This document shows, in pieces, positions 1 through 30,980 of a DNA stretch of 64,000 nt (the stretch's first letter is position 1; each line of letters opens with the position of its first letter). The notes under the pieces are model-generated. The model was not told the origin of the DNA, made no database searches, and saw nothing but the letters and a program-made list of their open reading frames with translations. The stretch lies in NCBI GenBank assembly GCA_965202585.1, contig OZ241834.1, forward strand, positions 23,498,001 to 23,562,000, written 5' to 3'. Both the position numbers and the translations under genes were made by a program. The stretch is from Thalia democratica (taxonomy: Eukaryota).

Positions 1-185
1 CTGCTTACATATAAACTGCCTGTCATGTTCTGATGTTTTGTTGCATCAGTATTTAGTTTGAAACATTTCGTCATATGATTCTCATTGGCTCGTACATTCA
101 ACCGTATTAACTCTAAATATTCTCTGAGCTCAACTTATACTTAACTTAACTAACAATAAATAATGCAAGTATTCCAAAGTTTTCA

Positions 186-580
186 ATTTTATAACATATG
201 TAAAGAGTTGCATTTCATGATATGTTTATTTCTTAGTTTAAATGTAAGCAAATGTAAATTAGTCACGTTTAGAAAATGAGCCAATCACGGTAGGTGTTTA
301 ATTTTAACTGACGAAAATAACTCTTATTAATTTACACAGGGTTTGTTTTTGAAAAATACTTTTCAGTATGCTCTTTTTTACTAACTAGATCCGGGTCCGG
401 CCGGATCTCTGTTAGGATCCGGCCGGACCCGGATCCGGACTTTTTTTTCAAATTAGAATCCGGCCGGAACCGGATCCGGACTTTTTTTTCAAATTAGAAT
501 CCGGCCGGATCCGGATATCAGACAAAAATGGCAATATCCGGCCGGACCCGGACCCGGATAGTGAGTCCGGTACATCACTA
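186..580 (-). mobile_element. Non-autonomous hAT-like element, left end plus internal segment; probably continues beyond the window start
   Basis: TIR TAGTGATGTACCGGA (reverse strand, ending at 580), followed by subterminal CCGGATCCGG/CCGGCCGG arrays. The internal 186-400 segment is an inverted copy of ~6830-7050. Confidence 0.8.
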
Positions 581-22583: not shown

Positions 22584-23704
22584 GGAAAAAATGATTTTTA
22601 GGCTTTTTGAATATATTAGACAATGTATCTAGATTATTGTTGCTCGGTATGTGAGTGGCTCTTAACTTTTTTGGTTTAGAATATTTATTTGCTTAATATT
22701 AATTTTAATTTTAAAAGCTTTTATCGATTTTAGTGAAATAAAAAAAAAAATTAGAATCTAAAGTTACATTATGTATTGTTATTACTTATGACACAAAAAA
22801 AACTTTTGCATTCTATTTTATTGTTTTTGAATTTTTTTGGATCATGTGTAGTTTGAAACTTTTCATTTTAAAAGTTTTTTTTATTATACTAAACATGTTT
22901 TAGGTTTATAAATTATAGAATATAAAAATAAATAGGTTTTCAATTTTTACTAAAATTAAACAGAAATATTCCTAAATTTATATTATTTTCAAAATAATAT
23001 TATATTTTTGTTAGTTTTATATTACCAACAAAATTTCAAACTGTTTCAAATTTCTGAACATATTGATAAGTGTTTAACACAAATTTCTGAACACTAATAA
23101 TTAAAAATATTACTAGCTAACAGACACAAAGCTAAAATGATTTAGCAGCTCTAAAATTTTCTCATTTAATAATAAGATAATAGAATTTATCGGAGACTCT
23201 TAGTTATACGCTTGCAATCTGGTCAAAAATTAAAATTTTCAATATTAACATTTTTGGAAATTTAATTAGGTTTTTACATGACAGTTAAATATAGTACTAG
23301 TTAACCAATGTGTTTATAATGTTAGTTAGAAAAGCCTTAATGTTGTTTTGTATAGAGGGTATGAGTTCCTATGTCAACCTATAAACATGTTGAAATATTT
23401 GGCATACTGATTACTTCATCAAATTTGTTTAATAATTCAGATGTTATTTAAAACGGGTTTTATAAAGTTGATTAACAGCAATAGTCTGCTGATAGAATTA
23501 TAAGTCAAAAGATGTGTGCTAAAAATGCAGTTTTGGTAAGCGTAAAATAAATAGAATTGGTGTAAAATAATAAACTCATCGGGTATAGTTACTAAATTGA
23601 TTAAATAACCCATGATTGAATATGTCTTTCTATGATTTAGTACGAATGCGTTTGAAAAAATAATTAAAATTTGATTTATAATAGTGCTGAAAAAGCACTC
23701 GGTT

Positions 23705-23930
23705 GTTTAGTTACAGATAACTTCCTTCGACATTGAAAAAATTTCCTACAGTTCAAAAAGATTTTTTAAACGCACCTTTTTCTTGAATTTAGACATTGCA
23801 AGCTAGGTTTCGTCTAGCATAAACAGTTTTATGAGTAACATATTGTAACTTATTTAAATTTCATACCAACTTAGCAATGCCTTACAATAAGGTTGTTAAT
23901 AGTCAGCTTGATATTGAAAAGGCATCAAAA
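23705..23930 (+). mobile_element. Highly decayed non-LTR retrotransposon RT fragment
   Basis: Motif remnants in the expected order, with stops and frameshifts: SYR..LP (~23709), QA(R/G)FR (23799-23813) and LDIEKA (23907-23924). These correspond to the LINE RT motifs YRPISLL / QAGFR / FLDIEKAFD. Confidence 0.4.
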
Positions 23931-24547
23931 CCTGAGCCGCTAAAAAAGATGAGACACAAGTAAAACATTAGAGACAGATAATTTTTTTAATTTAGTAATA
24001 TAGAGAAAATAAAATTGAACTAACAAAATACAATAACTCAAAAAATTAATAAATAATTTGGTGCATTAAAAAAACATAACACTTTAAGTTTAAACAAAAT
24101 ATATGATAATATTTATAAAAAGTTCTACAGCAATAATTCCCTAGTTCTATTTTCATTTGGTGATCGCTAGTCAAACTTGAAAGAAAAAAATGATGATAGT
24201 AAAACAAAAATGGTTCTTCAATATACTTAAGCTAAGATTTTAATCAGAAAAAGTTGTACATTTATGTTTGTTCATCTCGTATTAGTTTTTTTTTTGGATG
24301 CTGATTTAAAATTGAGGCAATTTGATTGAAAAATATTTTTGATTAAGTTATTTTTCAAACTACTTGAAATTTTTAAAGTCGTAGTATACAATTTTTATAA
24401 AATCATTTACAAAAAATAATTCTTACTTACTTGTTTCTTTACATTTAACTTTTTATGCCGATTTAAAGGAAACATAAATACAAACATTTTAAGAAAAAAG
24501 CTAGTATAAATCATAACAGCAACCTTAACATTAACCTTACTCTAGTT

Positions 24548-24743
24548 CAGTGCTTCTGAACCTTTTTCTACTGGCGGAACCCTTTTCCAAAATTCAAATT
24601 TTCCCCGGAACCCCTAATTTTACTTTTACATAAAATGTTTAATTAAATAAATGATCTTTTTTAAGTTTCAAAAGGCTTCGCGGAACCCCTGAGAGGCGTC
24701 GCGGAACCCTAGGGTTCCGCGGAACCCCATTTCAGAAGCACTG
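24548..24743. mobile_element. hAT-Charlie-type MITE with perfect 8-bp TSD CTCTAGTT
   Basis: CAGTGCTTCTGAA ... TTCAGAAGCACTG with internal GCGGAACCCC repeats. CTCTAGTT at 24540-24547 and 24744-24751 fits the NTCTAGAN target preference of Charlie elements. Confidence 0.92.
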
Positions 24744-25999
24744 CTCTAGTTTTTAAAATTACGAATAAACTTTTATCGATTATTAGAACAAAACCAAGAT
24801 TTATTTTAGATTTATTTTTTAACTGTAAGCAAAGTATAGATATGAATTTTTCTAAAATAGTTTTATTTTTAAACTAGTTTAAAAAAAAAACTTATTGTTG
24901 CTATGAAAAATGTATTTCTTTATTATACAGTGATAAATGAGTAGGTACTCAATAAAAATCTAAATATTGTAATACAAGACTAACATAGCTAATAAAGAAT
25001 TTTTGTATGCTAACTAACCTAAGTACTGTTCAAAATATTTGTTACAGTTTATTAAACGGAATAAACTACAAGTGAACACTTAACTTCATATAATGAAATA
25101 CTTTAAACAATAGACAATGTAATGACACTCAATTTGTATAGAAGGGCTACATTTGTTTAACATTTAAATTTAACAAGAAAAACTCTTTTGAGCGTTGAAA
25201 ACTTAATATATTTCTAAAATGTCTATTGGAAAACTCTTAAATGTGTCAAAATACCATTTTATTGTAATTGAAACCACTTCTTACTTAACATTTTTTACTG
25301 ATTAACTCTTTAAAATTATTTTTACCAAAAACTAACAAATTAAATACAATAAAAAAGTAAACTTAAAAAACATTTAATAAATTACAAATAGCAATGCAAA
25401 AACTCACAAAAATAGAATCTATATATAAAAACATTAAGTGTAGCTCTTGAGCTTAATTCAAGACCAAGCTGGCGTTAAATTTTTCTTTTTCTAAATATAA
25501 AAATACAAAAGGAAGCAAAAGTTCTACCAGCTCACATTAAATTTACATAAATATTGTTTCACTTAGTAGTTTATAGTTTTCTTAACGACTGTTTTGCTGC
25601 ATTAAGGTTTATTTTTATGTTTTTTTACTAAAACAATTTCAAACATTTTCACTTATTTTAATTTTAAGACTGTCTTGAGTTTTAATCATTTTTAAACTTT
25701 GATGCTATAAGTCTAAATTATTTTTTAGTCTTATTTTTTTTCCAGAAAAAGAGAGCAATGTAATGTATGTTTTTAAGTACTTTAATGAATTGTTTTATAT
25801 TATAAATGAACACAAAGTACTTTTTACACATAATTATTTTATTTTTTACTCAGAAGATGTGCACTGACTTTGTACATCATTGTAAAAGTGTGCTCATATA
25901 CAAAATATTCTAAAATGGATATGTTAAAAAATACAGTTTTTCTAAATATTAAGAGTTTTTTTATCAGTAGCACAGTATAGTTTTCTGCGGCATTCTAGA

Positions 26000-28900
26000 C
26001 TAAGTGCGTTTAATCGTATGCGCATCTACAACTAGCTTGCCTAAGGACGTTCCAACAGCTGAACACATCTGAAAATTATAAAAATGTTTAGAACAATCTT
26101 TAGAAATTAAAAAAAACTTGTTAGTTTTTATAGATGTAATAGAACATAAAAAATAATAAAACTACTGTTTCTAATTAAAATAGCTGAGCACTAATACGTA
26201 AGCTTAATATATAATAATACAGTTGCTTGTTTAACAATATAGATAACAGGCGTTGTTATGTAAAATTTCAAACACTGAAATTAACAGTTCAGTAATACTT
26301 TCGATAATGGTTTAACAAATTGTACTTGAAATCTGTAAAAAGTTAAGCTTGTGAATCTATATAGAGTTAGCGTGAATTTAATATAAAAAAAATCATTCTT
26401 CAATATTATTTTGAAAAAAAAAAAAAACTTAGTTAGCTTAGAAAGAGATAATTTTAAAACAACTAACTCTGCTCTGGATGAAGTCTTGTACATTTTTACT
26501 AAAAATCCATGCTGCAGACTCTGTAATATCATCGTCAATACCAGCCATAAACCTAGTAGAAAAAAGTCCTTTTGGTTGGAAATATAGACTGCGCTTATAT
26601 ATTCTTGTAGAACAAGTTCCCGTCTGTATCTGATTTTTAAGTTGAATTAGAGTTTTGGAAATAAATATTTTTTCTACTATAAGTGTCTCTTTTATTGAAT
26701 ATATTTTGAAAGCTTTGAAGAGCTTTATACGTTTATAAATTTTTCTGCTTTATTTATATGTACACTTACTTTTCAGTCAATAATTGCAATTAATTTACAA
26801 ACCTTAGAAAGTAAATATATAAACAAACTTAGTTTGTTAAAGTAAAACATTATACATAGTTGAATATATTGTAACAGGTAAACTCTTTTAAATATTTTCA
26901 ATTAATATACAAAATTTGAGATTTAATTGTATATCATCATTTACAGTTCAAGCTTAATTTTACTGCAAGTAAAAAAATATATAATTTCTTAAAAAAACAA
27001 CTTGAAATGTATTAAAGGCGGGACACGTTCAAAATCCACCCGTGATCGAAATCCACCCGATCAAAATCCACCCAGTCAAATTCGAGAACCGCTTACCGAA
27101 CGATGGTAAGGGTTAGGGGTAACAGTGATAATGAGAAATAAATGAAAAATAAATAAATTAAATTCAAAAAAAAAAAAAAATTAGTAAATAAAGAAATTGT
27201 AAAAAAAAAATTGGGTGATTTTTGAACGCGGGTGGATTTTGATAGTTTACTATTAAAGGCTTCAATTATCAAAGTAGTGTGTTTTATTTTTCAAGTTTTG
27301 AAATCTCTTTGTTTCATTAATAGTAATTGTTTTAATATTTTTGCTAGTAACATAAACTTTCAAAAGTATGATAAAAAAGTTTTTGCTTGAAAACACTTAA
27401 GTAAATATAAAAAAACATGTTTTACCTCTTTGAATCTTCTAAACCTCCCTTCAAATATGAGATTGAGACTTTGAGATACAAAAACTCGTTTGAGAGAAAT
27501 AAAGGCTGTTGCTGACGCAGAGTAAGTTTTTGACCTGTTATAAGTTGTATTGAAGTACTGTAAATATATATATATATACATATGTTTAGTATAAAAATTT
27601 TAGTTAAAAAAAATCAAACAATTTAATATCAAATAAGTTGACATATTTGCAATGATTACAAAAATCATTGTTATTTGAAATTTAATCCTGTATACAGTAA
27701 TGTGTATAGAAGTTTTTTTTTTAAAGCTTCAATGTTTACCACAACTTTACTATGTTAGTGTCAAAGTTTAGATGATAATTGTATATGCAGTTTTTTTGAA
27801 ATATTTTTTCTACAAACAAGTATAATACAGACTTACGAAAAAATGAAAATTGCATAAAGTTTAACCAAAAAAAACAAAGAAAATAGCTTACTTTCGATAA
27901 AGTAGTTTATTTATTTTGTAACAAATAAACTCAAGTATTTTAATATTTTTTTGATTTAGTTTCTAATTTACCAACTAAAGGTTTTAACATTATTTAGGTT
28001 TTTTCTTAAAGCAAACTAATTATTTTTCTTACTAAGTAACTTTAACAAATGTTAATTCTTAAGACAAAGTTTAGAAATTAAATTTCAATGTTTTATTTTT
28101 TTACTTATTTAAAAAAAAATCTCTAAATTTTTTACCAGTATTGATACCACATATTCTAAACTTATTTATATTTATTATTAAAATTTGCTTTCACTAAAAC
28201 TTCTAAGGATTTAAATTTTACCCTTATTTACGTTTGATCAAACGATTTGTTTTATCTACCGATTTTATCTATTCGTTAACATACCCAATTTCTTTTGTTA
28301 CTTCTACACTCCCAGAAAGGTTTACTTCACCATTTAATAAGTAAGCTACATATTTAGATGCTGTGTTCTTTTTGATAAACATTTTGTCGGCCTTAAACGC
28401 GTTCACCTTTATGCTATTAAAATAAAGTGTTATAAAAATTTCTGTACAGATAAAAAATTATTATTATACATTTATGAAGTTTATTAAAAATGATAAGCTT
28501 TTATATTTTGAAACTTGCAATAAAAACGATATACAAGCAGAAGAAAAAAATTTAAGGCTTATTTTATAAACAAACATTAATTATAAATGGCTTTACACCA
28601 ATGTAGTTTAAATTAACACTTGCACAAGTTTGTCTTCAGAAATATATAAAAACTGCTTACAGTTTTTTGTTTTATAGTTTGTTGTTTTATTTTGATTATT
28701 TTTTGAACAATACTCAGTATATATTGATTATTGATTGAGGTGTAAAAAAATATTTACTTTGTTATTGAAAAGCCTATTCCATTTTGTTGATATCCTAAAG
28801 TTTTAGAGCCAACATTTATGCCTTTTACTTCTTTGATTATTTCACCTGTTCTTTCTGGGTATTCTTCTACAAAAAAGATACTCAATTATACTACAAAAAT

Positions 28901-29276
28901 CCTTGAGCTCAAACAACTTTTATTTTTAATAAACAAAAAATTCTTTTTTTAATATTCTTCAACAAAATGATATATTTTTAGTTTGTAGTTTTAGTTGTAA
29001 AACATAAATTAATAGCACTTTAGTTTTAAAAATTTTAAATCATCAAAACAATAATAGCATAATAAAAGTTATTCGGTTACATTTAGCACTTTTTAAAGTT
29101 ATGCTGAATACTTTGATGACATGTTTTTATATATTTACTAAAAAATGTTTTGTTTTTACTTAAACTTAAAAAGTTAAAACTTATTTACTTAAAATAACAA
29201 GCTTGTCATCGCCTTTTCTTTGTCCATAAGAAATACCAATTAAAAAAGTAACAAGCAAAAGTACTTTAGTCGTCAT
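26000..29276 (-). CDS. Secreted single-domain BPI/LBP-like (TULIP N-terminal domain) protein, six exons, 221 aa
   Basis: Exons 29276-29189, 28866-28758, 28413-28285, 27534-27426, 26629-26468 and 26068-26000 all have GT-AG boundaries with matching phases (666 nt, no internal stop). Protein: MTTKVLLLVTFLIGISYG|QRKGDD...FSITNIKVNAFKAD...LLNGEVNLSGSVEV...YSASATAFISLKRVFVSQSLNL...QTGTCSTRI...DFIQSRMCSAV...RT*. It has a signal peptide, a beta-strand pattern, and a Cys pair placed like the conserved BPI N-domain disulfide. The family call is by motif recall. Confidence 0.75.
27020..27250. mobile_element. Short non-autonomous element with subterminal inverted repeats and a GGGTTAGGG core (Helentron-associated/HINE-like), in a BPI-like intron
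   Basis: TCAAAATCCACCCG occurs in several direct copies at the left end and inverted (CGGGTGGATTTTGA) at the right end. The core is AAGGGTTAGGGGTAACAGTGATA, and TATTAAAGGC flanks both sides. Confidence 0.6.
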
Positions 29277-30980
29277 AATGCTAGATGGGATAATTCTTAT
29301 AATAACATTCATAAAAAGTTTTTCATATATAGTATATTCCGAAGAAAGTTGTTTCATAAGCTTTATTTAAGTTTCGTGTTTTTTAAAAGGAATTTAGTAG
29401 CCGAAACTAAAACACAAAATTTCTTTTTACACACAGTTTACTTGTTCCTAATGACTTAAGGGCACTAGTTTATAAAAAAATGATTAAGAGTTTTTAATAC
29501 TAAAATAAATTTATAATCTTTAGTAATATAATTCTACAATTCGTGTCAGTATTTCTTGTTTAGCAAACAAATTTTTGTTTTTCACAAACATTGTGGTATT
29601 TAAGTTTCGGCTACATTCACTTTCCTTACATAAATATTTTAAAAACGAAAGTAATAAGTATCTGTTTTAATGAAAGTAATTTCAAAGCTAAAACGACATT
29701 TAAAACAAGCAAATAGTAAACTACTAGTACTGATCAACTACGATACTAGCAGGTCCACGACAAAGCTAAAGTTATTGTTTTATGGAGAGTAAATCTAAAA
29801 CTGTAAATACATGTACTTACAAAATATACTTTAATAAACAATGTAAGTTTGATAAACTAATAAATGTTATGTAAAAAATATCAAACAAGTACTTTTTTTT
29901 GTTTCCTTAGCTGAAAAAGTTATACTTTTTAGTTACGTGAGTTAATAAAATGTTCAACTAAACATTGGATTATTTTGTTTATGTTTTAATTTAATTTAAT
30001 TCATTTTAAATTAAACAATTAAGATTAAACTTCAGCCTAAACTTTAACAAAGTTTGTAAATGGCAAACATATATAAGTTGCCAATATTTTAAAATTTATT
30101 CTTTTATTTAATTTAAACACATTGAAAGCGTGCAATAGTGCTACAAGCTTGAATAAAAGCTTTTGAAATCAAAAATTAAAGTTTTCACAAAAAGTGTTTT
30201 TCTACTAATTTTTATTTTGGTAATAAACAACATAAAAACTTTAATGGTTTCAAAGTTTGCTTTAAAGTTAGACATTTTTGGCAGGCTGCAGCTTTTAAAA
30301 TTTAAACCCAACAAATAAAAAAAACATACAAACAATTTGATTACGAAATATTTTAAACACTTTAGGTCTACCAATATAAACTAGATGTATAAATATGATA
30401 AATATGAGTTTTTTATTGCGATCATTGATTCATGCACGAGACATATTGTAAACTAATTAAAGTAAAATTATCAAATTGTTTTATTACTAATTATGATAAA
30501 ATGAGCAAAACCTTATAAATCCGCAGCAACCACTAAAACGGCGTGTATATACATAAAAATTTGAATATAAAACAAGAGTCGCCATGTGGAATCGGTTTAG
30601 ATACGACTTCATGTAACAACTATATAATGCTGTATTTTCTCTTGAGCCTGTATGAATAAATATTCAACTACAGCCAACAACACAAATGGGACTTGAACAT
30701 TTTGGCTGATGAAAAAGTATTTTAAAGCCTATTTCCACTTATTATTTTATCTTTATGCTATGTTTGTTTGATGTTTTGAATTTTTACCCAGACTCAAAAA
30801 ATAAATCGTTTCCCAGAAGCTAAAGATAACTTATTTCAAATATTAGTTCATTTCGCCAAACAATCATTAAATTTACGCTTTATTAATATACATATAGCAT
30901 TATAAAACTAAACATAATTATATAACTAAGTATTTTCATTTTGTCTTATTTTTATTGAGTGTTATATACACATCATTCTA

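Follow-up and report, generated by a model that had tools for sequence, protein, structure and literature searches.

The 64,000-nucleotide window of the Thalia democratica assembly GCA_965202585.1 analysed here (contig OZ241834.1, positions 23,498,001 to 23,562,000) contains on its minus strand, between 29276 and 26000, an intact and transcribed six-exon gene for a precursor of 221 amino acids. Its product is predicted to be secreted and strongly cationic, and we propose that it is a one-barrel relative of the lipid-binding proteins BPI and LBP. The window DNA is AT-rich and eukaryotic (21–45% GC), and positions are those of the window unless another contig is named.

A six-exon gene and its transcript

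Rejoining the six exons from the sequence gives an open reading frame (ORF) of 666 nucleotides (nt) that runs from ATG to stop, with five GT–AG introns in phases 1, 2, 2, 0 and 0, and the phase-consistent 221-residue model of the preliminary description of this DNA is reproduced exactly. That description had called the gene hidden, with a single exon visible among the listed ORFs; the term is fair, as ORFs of at least 60 amino acids contain only exon 4 of the six (27360–27581). The features of the locus are as follows.

29189..29276, minus strand: exon 1, with the ATG at 29276, encoding the putative 18-residue signal peptide MTTKVLLLVTFLIGISYG and the initial 11 residues of the mature protein, and ending in phase 1 at the donor GTAAAT.
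28758..28866, minus strand: exon 2, 109 nt, phase 1 to 2, covered by contigs 3, 4 and 5 of RNA run X1.
28285..28413, minus strand: exon 3, 129 nt, phase 2 to 2, encoding IKVNAF...NGEVNLSGSVEVTKEI, with an RNA contig on 28413–28283.
27426..27534, minus strand: exon 4, 109 nt, phase 2 to 0, using the downstream acceptor ..ataacag/G and fixed by the RNA piece 27532–27426.
26468..26629, minus strand: exon 5, 162 nt, phase 0 to 0, identical to the RNA contig (0 differences).
26000..26068, minus strand: coding part of exon 6, with the second cysteine as its residue 2 (MCSAVG...), 20 more residues, and TAG at 26002–26000.
25956..25999, minus strand: 3’ untranslated region (UTR), to the extent visible in the spliced RNA contig.

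Transcript evidence comes from Logan contigs of a 2016 marine metatranscriptome (run X1), the sole RNA run covering part of the stretch, which were mapped on 23600–29500. A contig of 568 nt lies on the genome in the pieces 28413–28283, 27532–27426, 26629–26468 and 26068–25956; the 2-base offsets at the exon 3/exon 4 joint reflect a GG/GT ambiguity, and the joined sequence is the same as for 28285/27534. The first 55 letters of this contig are on exon 2, an assignment made because the depth at 28788 sums three contigs and falls to that of two at 28813 (X1 depth is 19.5 at 28788–28789 and 12.4 at 28813). Two X1 contigs of 97 nt stop at 28866 and continue for 13 loose letters, which match the final 13 bases of exon 1 in reverse complement. 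The joints between exon pieces together with these 13 letters therefore give RNA support to all five predicted junctions, the first of them by the 13 letters only. The intron-skipping form was seen only in pieces of the RNA run, there being no intron joint among the listed joints of the DNA runs X2 and X3 (both taken from one sample), and two metagenome scans found no spliced complementary DNA contig of the gene. An alternative exon 3/exon 4 junction, with its donor after GGGTAT and its acceptor at 27557, was ruled out, as the RNA contig joins 28285/27534.

At the 3’ end the 568-nt contig extends 44 nt beyond the TAG without splicing (26068–25956), and this transcript is therefore not spliced onto further coding exons; RNA coverage of exon 6 consists of this one assembled contig from one metatranscriptome. 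The 1 kb downstream of the stop has no coding look. Further X1 contigs at 25133–25372 and 25403–25746 are unspliced, AT-rich and of non-coding appearance, and may represent either a 3’ UTR of approximately 870 nt or more, or a separate non-coding transcript. An AATAAA motif is present near 25050.

The N-terminus, MTTKVLLLVTFLIGISYG followed by Q, resembles a signal peptide in its pattern: one residue is basic, the core is hydrophobic, and positions -3 and -1 are occupied by small residues. The mature protein of 203 residues contains 32 K+R and 18 D+E, giving a net charge of +14 and an isoelectric point (pI) of 9.82, so that the 18-residue signal peptide and K/R-rich mature region described beforehand are both recovered. 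Exon 2 encodes a short helix-like segment and then a strand with GFSIT at its end, followed by two bases of a split Asn codon (AA/C). Exactly two cysteines are present, as had been described, at residues 151 (GTCST) and 201 (SRMCS), with the stop 20 residues beyond the second; the first lies 5 residues into exon 5 and is followed by a beta segment and then by the greater part of a long amphipathic helix.

A cationic family and its acidic relatives

Exons 5 and 3 were used to find relatives in the organism’s own assembly, and gene models were built by homology and splice-site phase. Contig C8 carries four full copies (A, B, C and E) and one partial copy (D) within 35 kb (C8:35.91–35.94 Mb), and contig C10, which is the contig of the window, carries a further full copy (F) 2 Mb from the window gene. 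All five full paralogues have six exons with the same phases as the window gene, encode 219–227 amino acids with an 18-residue signal peptide, and have two mature cysteines in the motifs GTC[ST]T and [LMI]CSAIG with a stop 23–24 residues past the second. Across the six family members the pI is 9.6–9.9, the net charge +11 to +21 and the cysteine spacing 45–50 residues, and exon 3 is the most conserved exon. The window gene is the most divergent of the six. It has its exons, phases, cysteine pair and stop position in common with the C8 cluster, and differs in standing alone on C10, in being only 48–53% identical to the five others, in a shorter exon 3/exon 4 loop and in a 4-residue acidic insert in the helix. 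Pairwise ratios of nonsynonymous to synonymous substitution rates (dN/dS) are 0.15–0.73 in the family and 0.47–0.58 between the window gene and the others; as pairwise estimates, they indicate moderate purifying selection in the family.

The C8 cluster shows several degrees of duplication. Paralogues A and B (C8:35909473–35919585) have 98% protein identity and a dS of 0.048, a very recent tandem duplication within the cluster, and E and F are 94% identical despite lying on different contigs. In the partial copy D (C8:35932700–35933715, plus strand) exons 1–3 are recognisable and no exons 4–6 were found ahead of the gene that comes next; this copy probably represents a truncated pseudogene.

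The family can be connected to BPI and LBP through two genes on contig C1 that we refer to as BPIL1 and BPIL2. These were found from two weak exon matches to the Pfam family PF01273; a 40 kb region (C1:77292001–77332000) was examined, and models were derived from tblastx comparison between the two genes and reading of splice sites.

C1:~77301090–77308143, plus strand: BPIL1, six exons, acidic product (pI 5.5).
C1:~77318843–77321372, minus strand: BPIL2, six exons, acidic product (pI 4.9).

The two genes are convergently oriented and contain the only PF01273-like exons recovered by the genome scan. Both have introns in phases 1, 2, 2, 0 and 0 and encode approximately 205–210 amino acids with a signal peptide, two cysteines and an in-frame stop about 27 residues past the second cysteine, and comparison of the two revealed no conserved exons downstream of either. 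Their fifth exons match positions 117–156 of the 168 in PF01273 with E values of 9.1e-5 (BPIL1) and 0.0046 (BPIL2); at 22.6 and 17.1 bits these matches are under the gathering score of 28.8, and they cover a single exon. BPIL exon 5 also matches mouse LBP (4m4d) with an E value of 1.5e-5 among 177,635 sequences, including a LENK-[IV]-C motif, and human BPI (1bp1) with an E value of 0.04, and the first BPIL cysteine is aligned with the LBP and BPI cysteine. On these matches BPIL1 and BPIL2 look like short, one-barrel LBP/BPI homologues.

Full-length hhalign comparison of the six-member family with BPIL1 and BPIL2 places window residues 10–208 on BPIL1 residues 8–190 over 181 columns, with a probability of 85%, a P value of 5.8e-6 and a score of 43.1. 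Two hundred column shuffles scored 13.0 ± 2.1 with a maximum of 20.9 (z≈14), a lenient control since it destroys helix and strand periodicity. An alignment of partial models, window 146–208 on partial BPIL1 75–127, has a probability of 53%, a P value of 1.4e-4 and a score of 33.3, compared to 12.9 ± 2.5 (maximum 24.6) for 300 shuffles and 11.7 for the reversed control. Both cysteines of all six family members fall at the BPIL1/2 cysteine columns, window exon 5 is aligned to the exon of each gene that matches PF01273, and exon 3 is aligned to BPIL1 and BPIL2 exon 3 (INVHSF and IDVHSF respectively).

The exon–intron organisation is likewise common to the two groups, with all five intron phases the same and three of the five intron positions identical. 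The first of these splits an Asn codon (AA/C) immediately before I-x-V-[NH]-[SA]-F, and the other two are in phase 0, one lying 5 residues before the first cysteine and one a single residue before the second; the remaining two introns agree in phase and are 2–3 residues apart, in poorly aligned loops. Gene structure is independent of the alignment and therefore gives separate support for homology between the window family and BPIL1/2. In the chicken, the BPI family (BPI/LBP/PLUNC) has exon sizes of 112–115, 129, 156, 64 and 61 nt (Table 3, PMC3253384). BPIL2 has exons of 94, 135 and 91+129 nt, the last two adding up to the 220 nt of the vertebrate 156+64, and the window gene has 109, 129 and 109+162; this parallel with vertebrate BPI/LBP/PLUNC genes is one of sizes, the vertebrate phases being unmapped, and is only suggestive. 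Support for the BPI/LBP link is indirect but good, and comes from the full-length profile comparison together with the common gene structure and from no single exon. The BPI/LBP-like assignment of the preliminary description accordingly holds up by way of BPIL1 and BPIL2, through the hhalign, PF01273, LBP, BPI and intron results, and fails in its direct form, Pfam being blind to the window family itself.

An alternative origin would make the window family and BPIL1/2 lineage-specific, beta-rich secreted proteins unrelated to BPI/LBP, with the likeness of exon 5 reflecting a convergent motif of cysteine, strand and amphipathic helix. Such an origin would agree with the BPIL Pfam matches being sub-gathering and confined to one exon, and with the window family never matching BPI/LBP directly; it is nevertheless improbable in view of the strength of the LBP match with its LENK-[IV]-C motif, the aligned cysteine pair, and the suggestive parallel in exon sizes and phases with vertebrate BPI-family genes (91+129 = 156+64 = 220 nt; PMC3253384).

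The six family members all stop 20–25 residues past the second cysteine, and BPIL1 and BPIL2 likewise stop soon after theirs; this bears on whether the short form is the real product or whether the main transcript continues into exons for a second domain. The dependence of exon 6 on one contig leaves some room for a longer transcript. That contig reads unspliced past the stop into non-coding-looking DNA, however, the five paralogues, BPIL1 and BPIL2 all end at an in-frame stop in the corresponding position, and there is neither a conserved exon downstream of the BPIL genes nor a PF02886 signal (a six-frame scan for the latter found nothing anywhere in the genome, and is insensitive enough to have no bearing on absence). 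We regard a longer main product as extremely unlikely, and the half-size architecture first read from the letters stands, with no splicing onto a second domain.

Hydrophobic periodicity of the family alignment, a crude measure, is strand-like at approximately 20–31, 62–83, 92–108, 116–145 and 151–165, and helix-like at approximately 36–43 and 174–210. This profile is consistent with how the elements of the BPI N-terminal barrel follow one another, and proves nothing.

Proposed role of the product

Taking the gene, its family and its relatives together, we favour with reasonable confidence a half-size, cationic, secreted one-barrel descendant of BPI/LBP that would act as a BPI-like antimicrobial, opsonising or lipid-carrying effector. 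The family would derive from an LBP/BPI-type gene of which only the equivalent of the first barrel, the N-terminal and lipid A-binding one, was kept; this part would comprise a strand, a short helix, a beta sheet and a long amphipathic helix that has the first cysteine close to its start and the second close to its end. Its product would be secreted via the signal peptide, the cysteine pair would probably form a disulfide of the BPI type by which the long helix is held against the sheet, and a lipid-binding groove would be brought by the strongly cationic surface to anionic lipids (lipopolysaccharide (LPS) or lipid A) on microbes. Such a half-size effector would resemble BPI’s active N-terminal fragment. 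The proposal builds on what is established, namely the gene model and its splicing, a product without a second domain, a family that is under selection below neutrality, and the homology of this family to two LBP/BPI-like genes in the same genome.

Several results weigh against this interpretation. By direct sequence search the window family is an orphan: with Pfam at E≤10 neither the window gene, searched as six exon pieces, nor the fifth exons of the five paralogues gave a match, the window was not picked by a six-frame PF01273 scan of the genome, and family profiles of exons 3 and 5 gave only chance matches against Protein Data Bank (PDB) sequences. Nor does exon 5 by itself carry the connection to the BPIL genes. 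An hhalign comparison of the family and BPIL restricted to this exon reached 8.5% with the first cysteine motif alone aligned, the family exon-5 profile run against the whole genome recovered the six members while its weak matches included none of the BPIL exons, a mixed profile of family and BPIL exon 5 lost the LBP/BPI matches in the PDB, and a family hidden Markov model (HMM) run against open frames of the BPIL region put the BPIL1 exon with the first cysteine in first place with only 6 bits. The window copy itself is without the aromatic–cationic loop found at the exon 3/exon 4 joint of other members (FWKWKK in A–C, shorter in E and F), at a site that we take to correspond to the tip of the LPS-binding hairpin of BPI, and has a 4-residue acidic insert (DDDI) in its long helix. 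Among the DNA runs, an X3 contig over 28184–29240 has 16 differences from the window, two of which, 28788 T>C and 28789 G>A on the plus strand, together change codon 56 from CAA to TGA, a premature stop; the codon is intact (CAA) in X2 and in the RNA contigs. The sequenced sample may thus be heterozygous for a null allele, which may fit either a dispensable, fast-evolving effector gene or an early stage of decay of the window copy.

That the window copy is decaying towards a pseudogene would also accord with its being the most divergent of the family and without the cationic–aromatic loop. The reference allele, though, is intact over six exons with canonical splice sites, the spliced RNA has no premature stop, and dN/dS against the paralogues is 0.47–0.58, and we give decay hardly any credence.

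Wider searches with exon 5 were equally uninformative as to relatives. A phmmer search of 1.84 billion representative proteins returned repeat-protein artefacts only, without a self-match, and the window family is therefore absent from that library; the ESM Atlas gave an uninformative score of 0.76. The epithet ‘lineage-specific’ that was attached to the protein at the outset is consistent with this blank database search and is unproven.

The competing interpretation to which we give most room, at a clearly lower probability than an effector, is that the same one-barrel BPI fold has a non-immune role, in carrying lipids, in acting like a surfactant or in forming part of the structure of mucus; roles of this kind are discussed for TULIP proteins, among them the short PLUNC/BPIFA proteins of mammals. 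The functional evidence is homology and charge only, cationic and acidic branches fit diversified lipid carriers as well as they do effectors, and expression was seen in an unchallenged natural sample. A net charge of +11 to +21 in all six members is typical of membrane-targeting antimicrobial proteins, however, and rapid divergence, duplication in tandem and the presence of a null allele are what immune effector families typically show.

Two repeats lie in or near the gene. An element at 27026..27243, within intron 4 and outside the coding gene, resembles a miniature inverted-repeat transposable element and has 33-nt inverted arms (82% complementary) composed of AAAATCCACCCG-type repeats; its summed contig depth in the DNA runs is approximately 390,000, compared to approximately 100–600 in neighbouring non-repeat bins. 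A second very high-copy repeat at 24388–24781 has a summed depth of 115,000–320,000 in these runs, with many variant letters and joints.

Comparison with known BPI-fold proteins

BPI-fold proteins, and one-domain forms of them in the mammalian BPIFA proteins, are already known; what is new here is a pair of acidic sister genes, recognisable by Pfam, that anchor the window family to LBP/BPI. BPIL1 and BPIL2 agree with that family in their six exons, phases, signal peptide and cysteine columns, and differ in being acidic (against pI 9.6–9.9 in the window family) and in having the only fifth exons recognised by PF01273, LBP or BPI. By analogy, the acidic BPIL pair and the cationic window family recall the contrast between LBP and BPI.

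The mammalian short PLUNC/BPIFA proteins (e.g. BPIFA1/SPLUNC1) resemble the window protein in being one-domain, secreted proteins with a single cysteine pair near the C-terminus, and in forming fast-evolving, tandemly duplicated families. They run approximately 30 residues past their second cysteine, further than the window protein, and most are not known to be strongly cationic. Nothing points to BPIFA orthology, the nearest relatives detected being the BPIL genes of the same genome in a comparison that included no BPIFA protein. One-domain BPI-fold proteins are usually regarded as a mammalian innovation. Single-domain forms were not found in birds (PMC3253384), and with the nearest relatives in the same genome the one-barrel architecture here is therefore probably independent of mammalian BPIFA. 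The marine invertebrate BPIs treated in one review are two-domain proteins (PMC10672452), and no description of one-barrel forms was found in the literature on tunicates or other invertebrates, of which coverage is incomplete. We can offer a fuller scenario only tentatively: a one-barrel BPI may have evolved in this marine animal independently of the mammalian short PLUNC/BPIFA proteins, from a gene ending at about vertebrate exon 7, and have split into the acidic, LBP-like BPIL1/2 and a strongly cationic, BPI-like family; short forms of both kinds may replace two-domain LBP/BPI. No sign of a canonical two-domain LBP/BPI was detected in the genome, a negative that is subject to the insensitivity of the PF02886 scan.

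If a non-vertebrate family of cationic N-terminal half-barrels is confirmed, it would mean that the LPS-binding half can serve by itself as an effector, and its members would be natural equivalents of engineered N-terminal BPI fragments and a compact scaffold for studies of LPS binding. The cationic family and its acidic sister genes would also provide a natural experiment on charge tuning between BPI-like and LBP-like behaviour. More generally, exon structure and intermediate sequences can place families that standard domain searches miss.

A structural comparison can be made with the N-terminal barrel of BPI and LBP from vertebrates and invertebrates. Like these proteins, the window protein would be secreted, with an N-terminal part that is cationic and a predicted succession of strand, short helix, sheet, cysteine, long helix and cysteine. 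The cysteine spacing of 45–50 in the window family compares with approximately 39 in the LBP alignment, and the BPI pair is Cys135–Cys175, a spacing of 40. Relative to BPI/LBP there are approximately 10 extra residues from the I-x-V-x-x-F motif to the first cysteine and no direct HMM match, the C-terminal barrel, proline-rich linker and central sheet are lacking, and the last strands of the N-terminal barrel are apparently absent from the window protein, which ends about 20 residues past its second cysteine. Recombinant BPI fragments of approximately 193–199 residues are active, and the end point of the window family is close to theirs. [quoted passage not shown]

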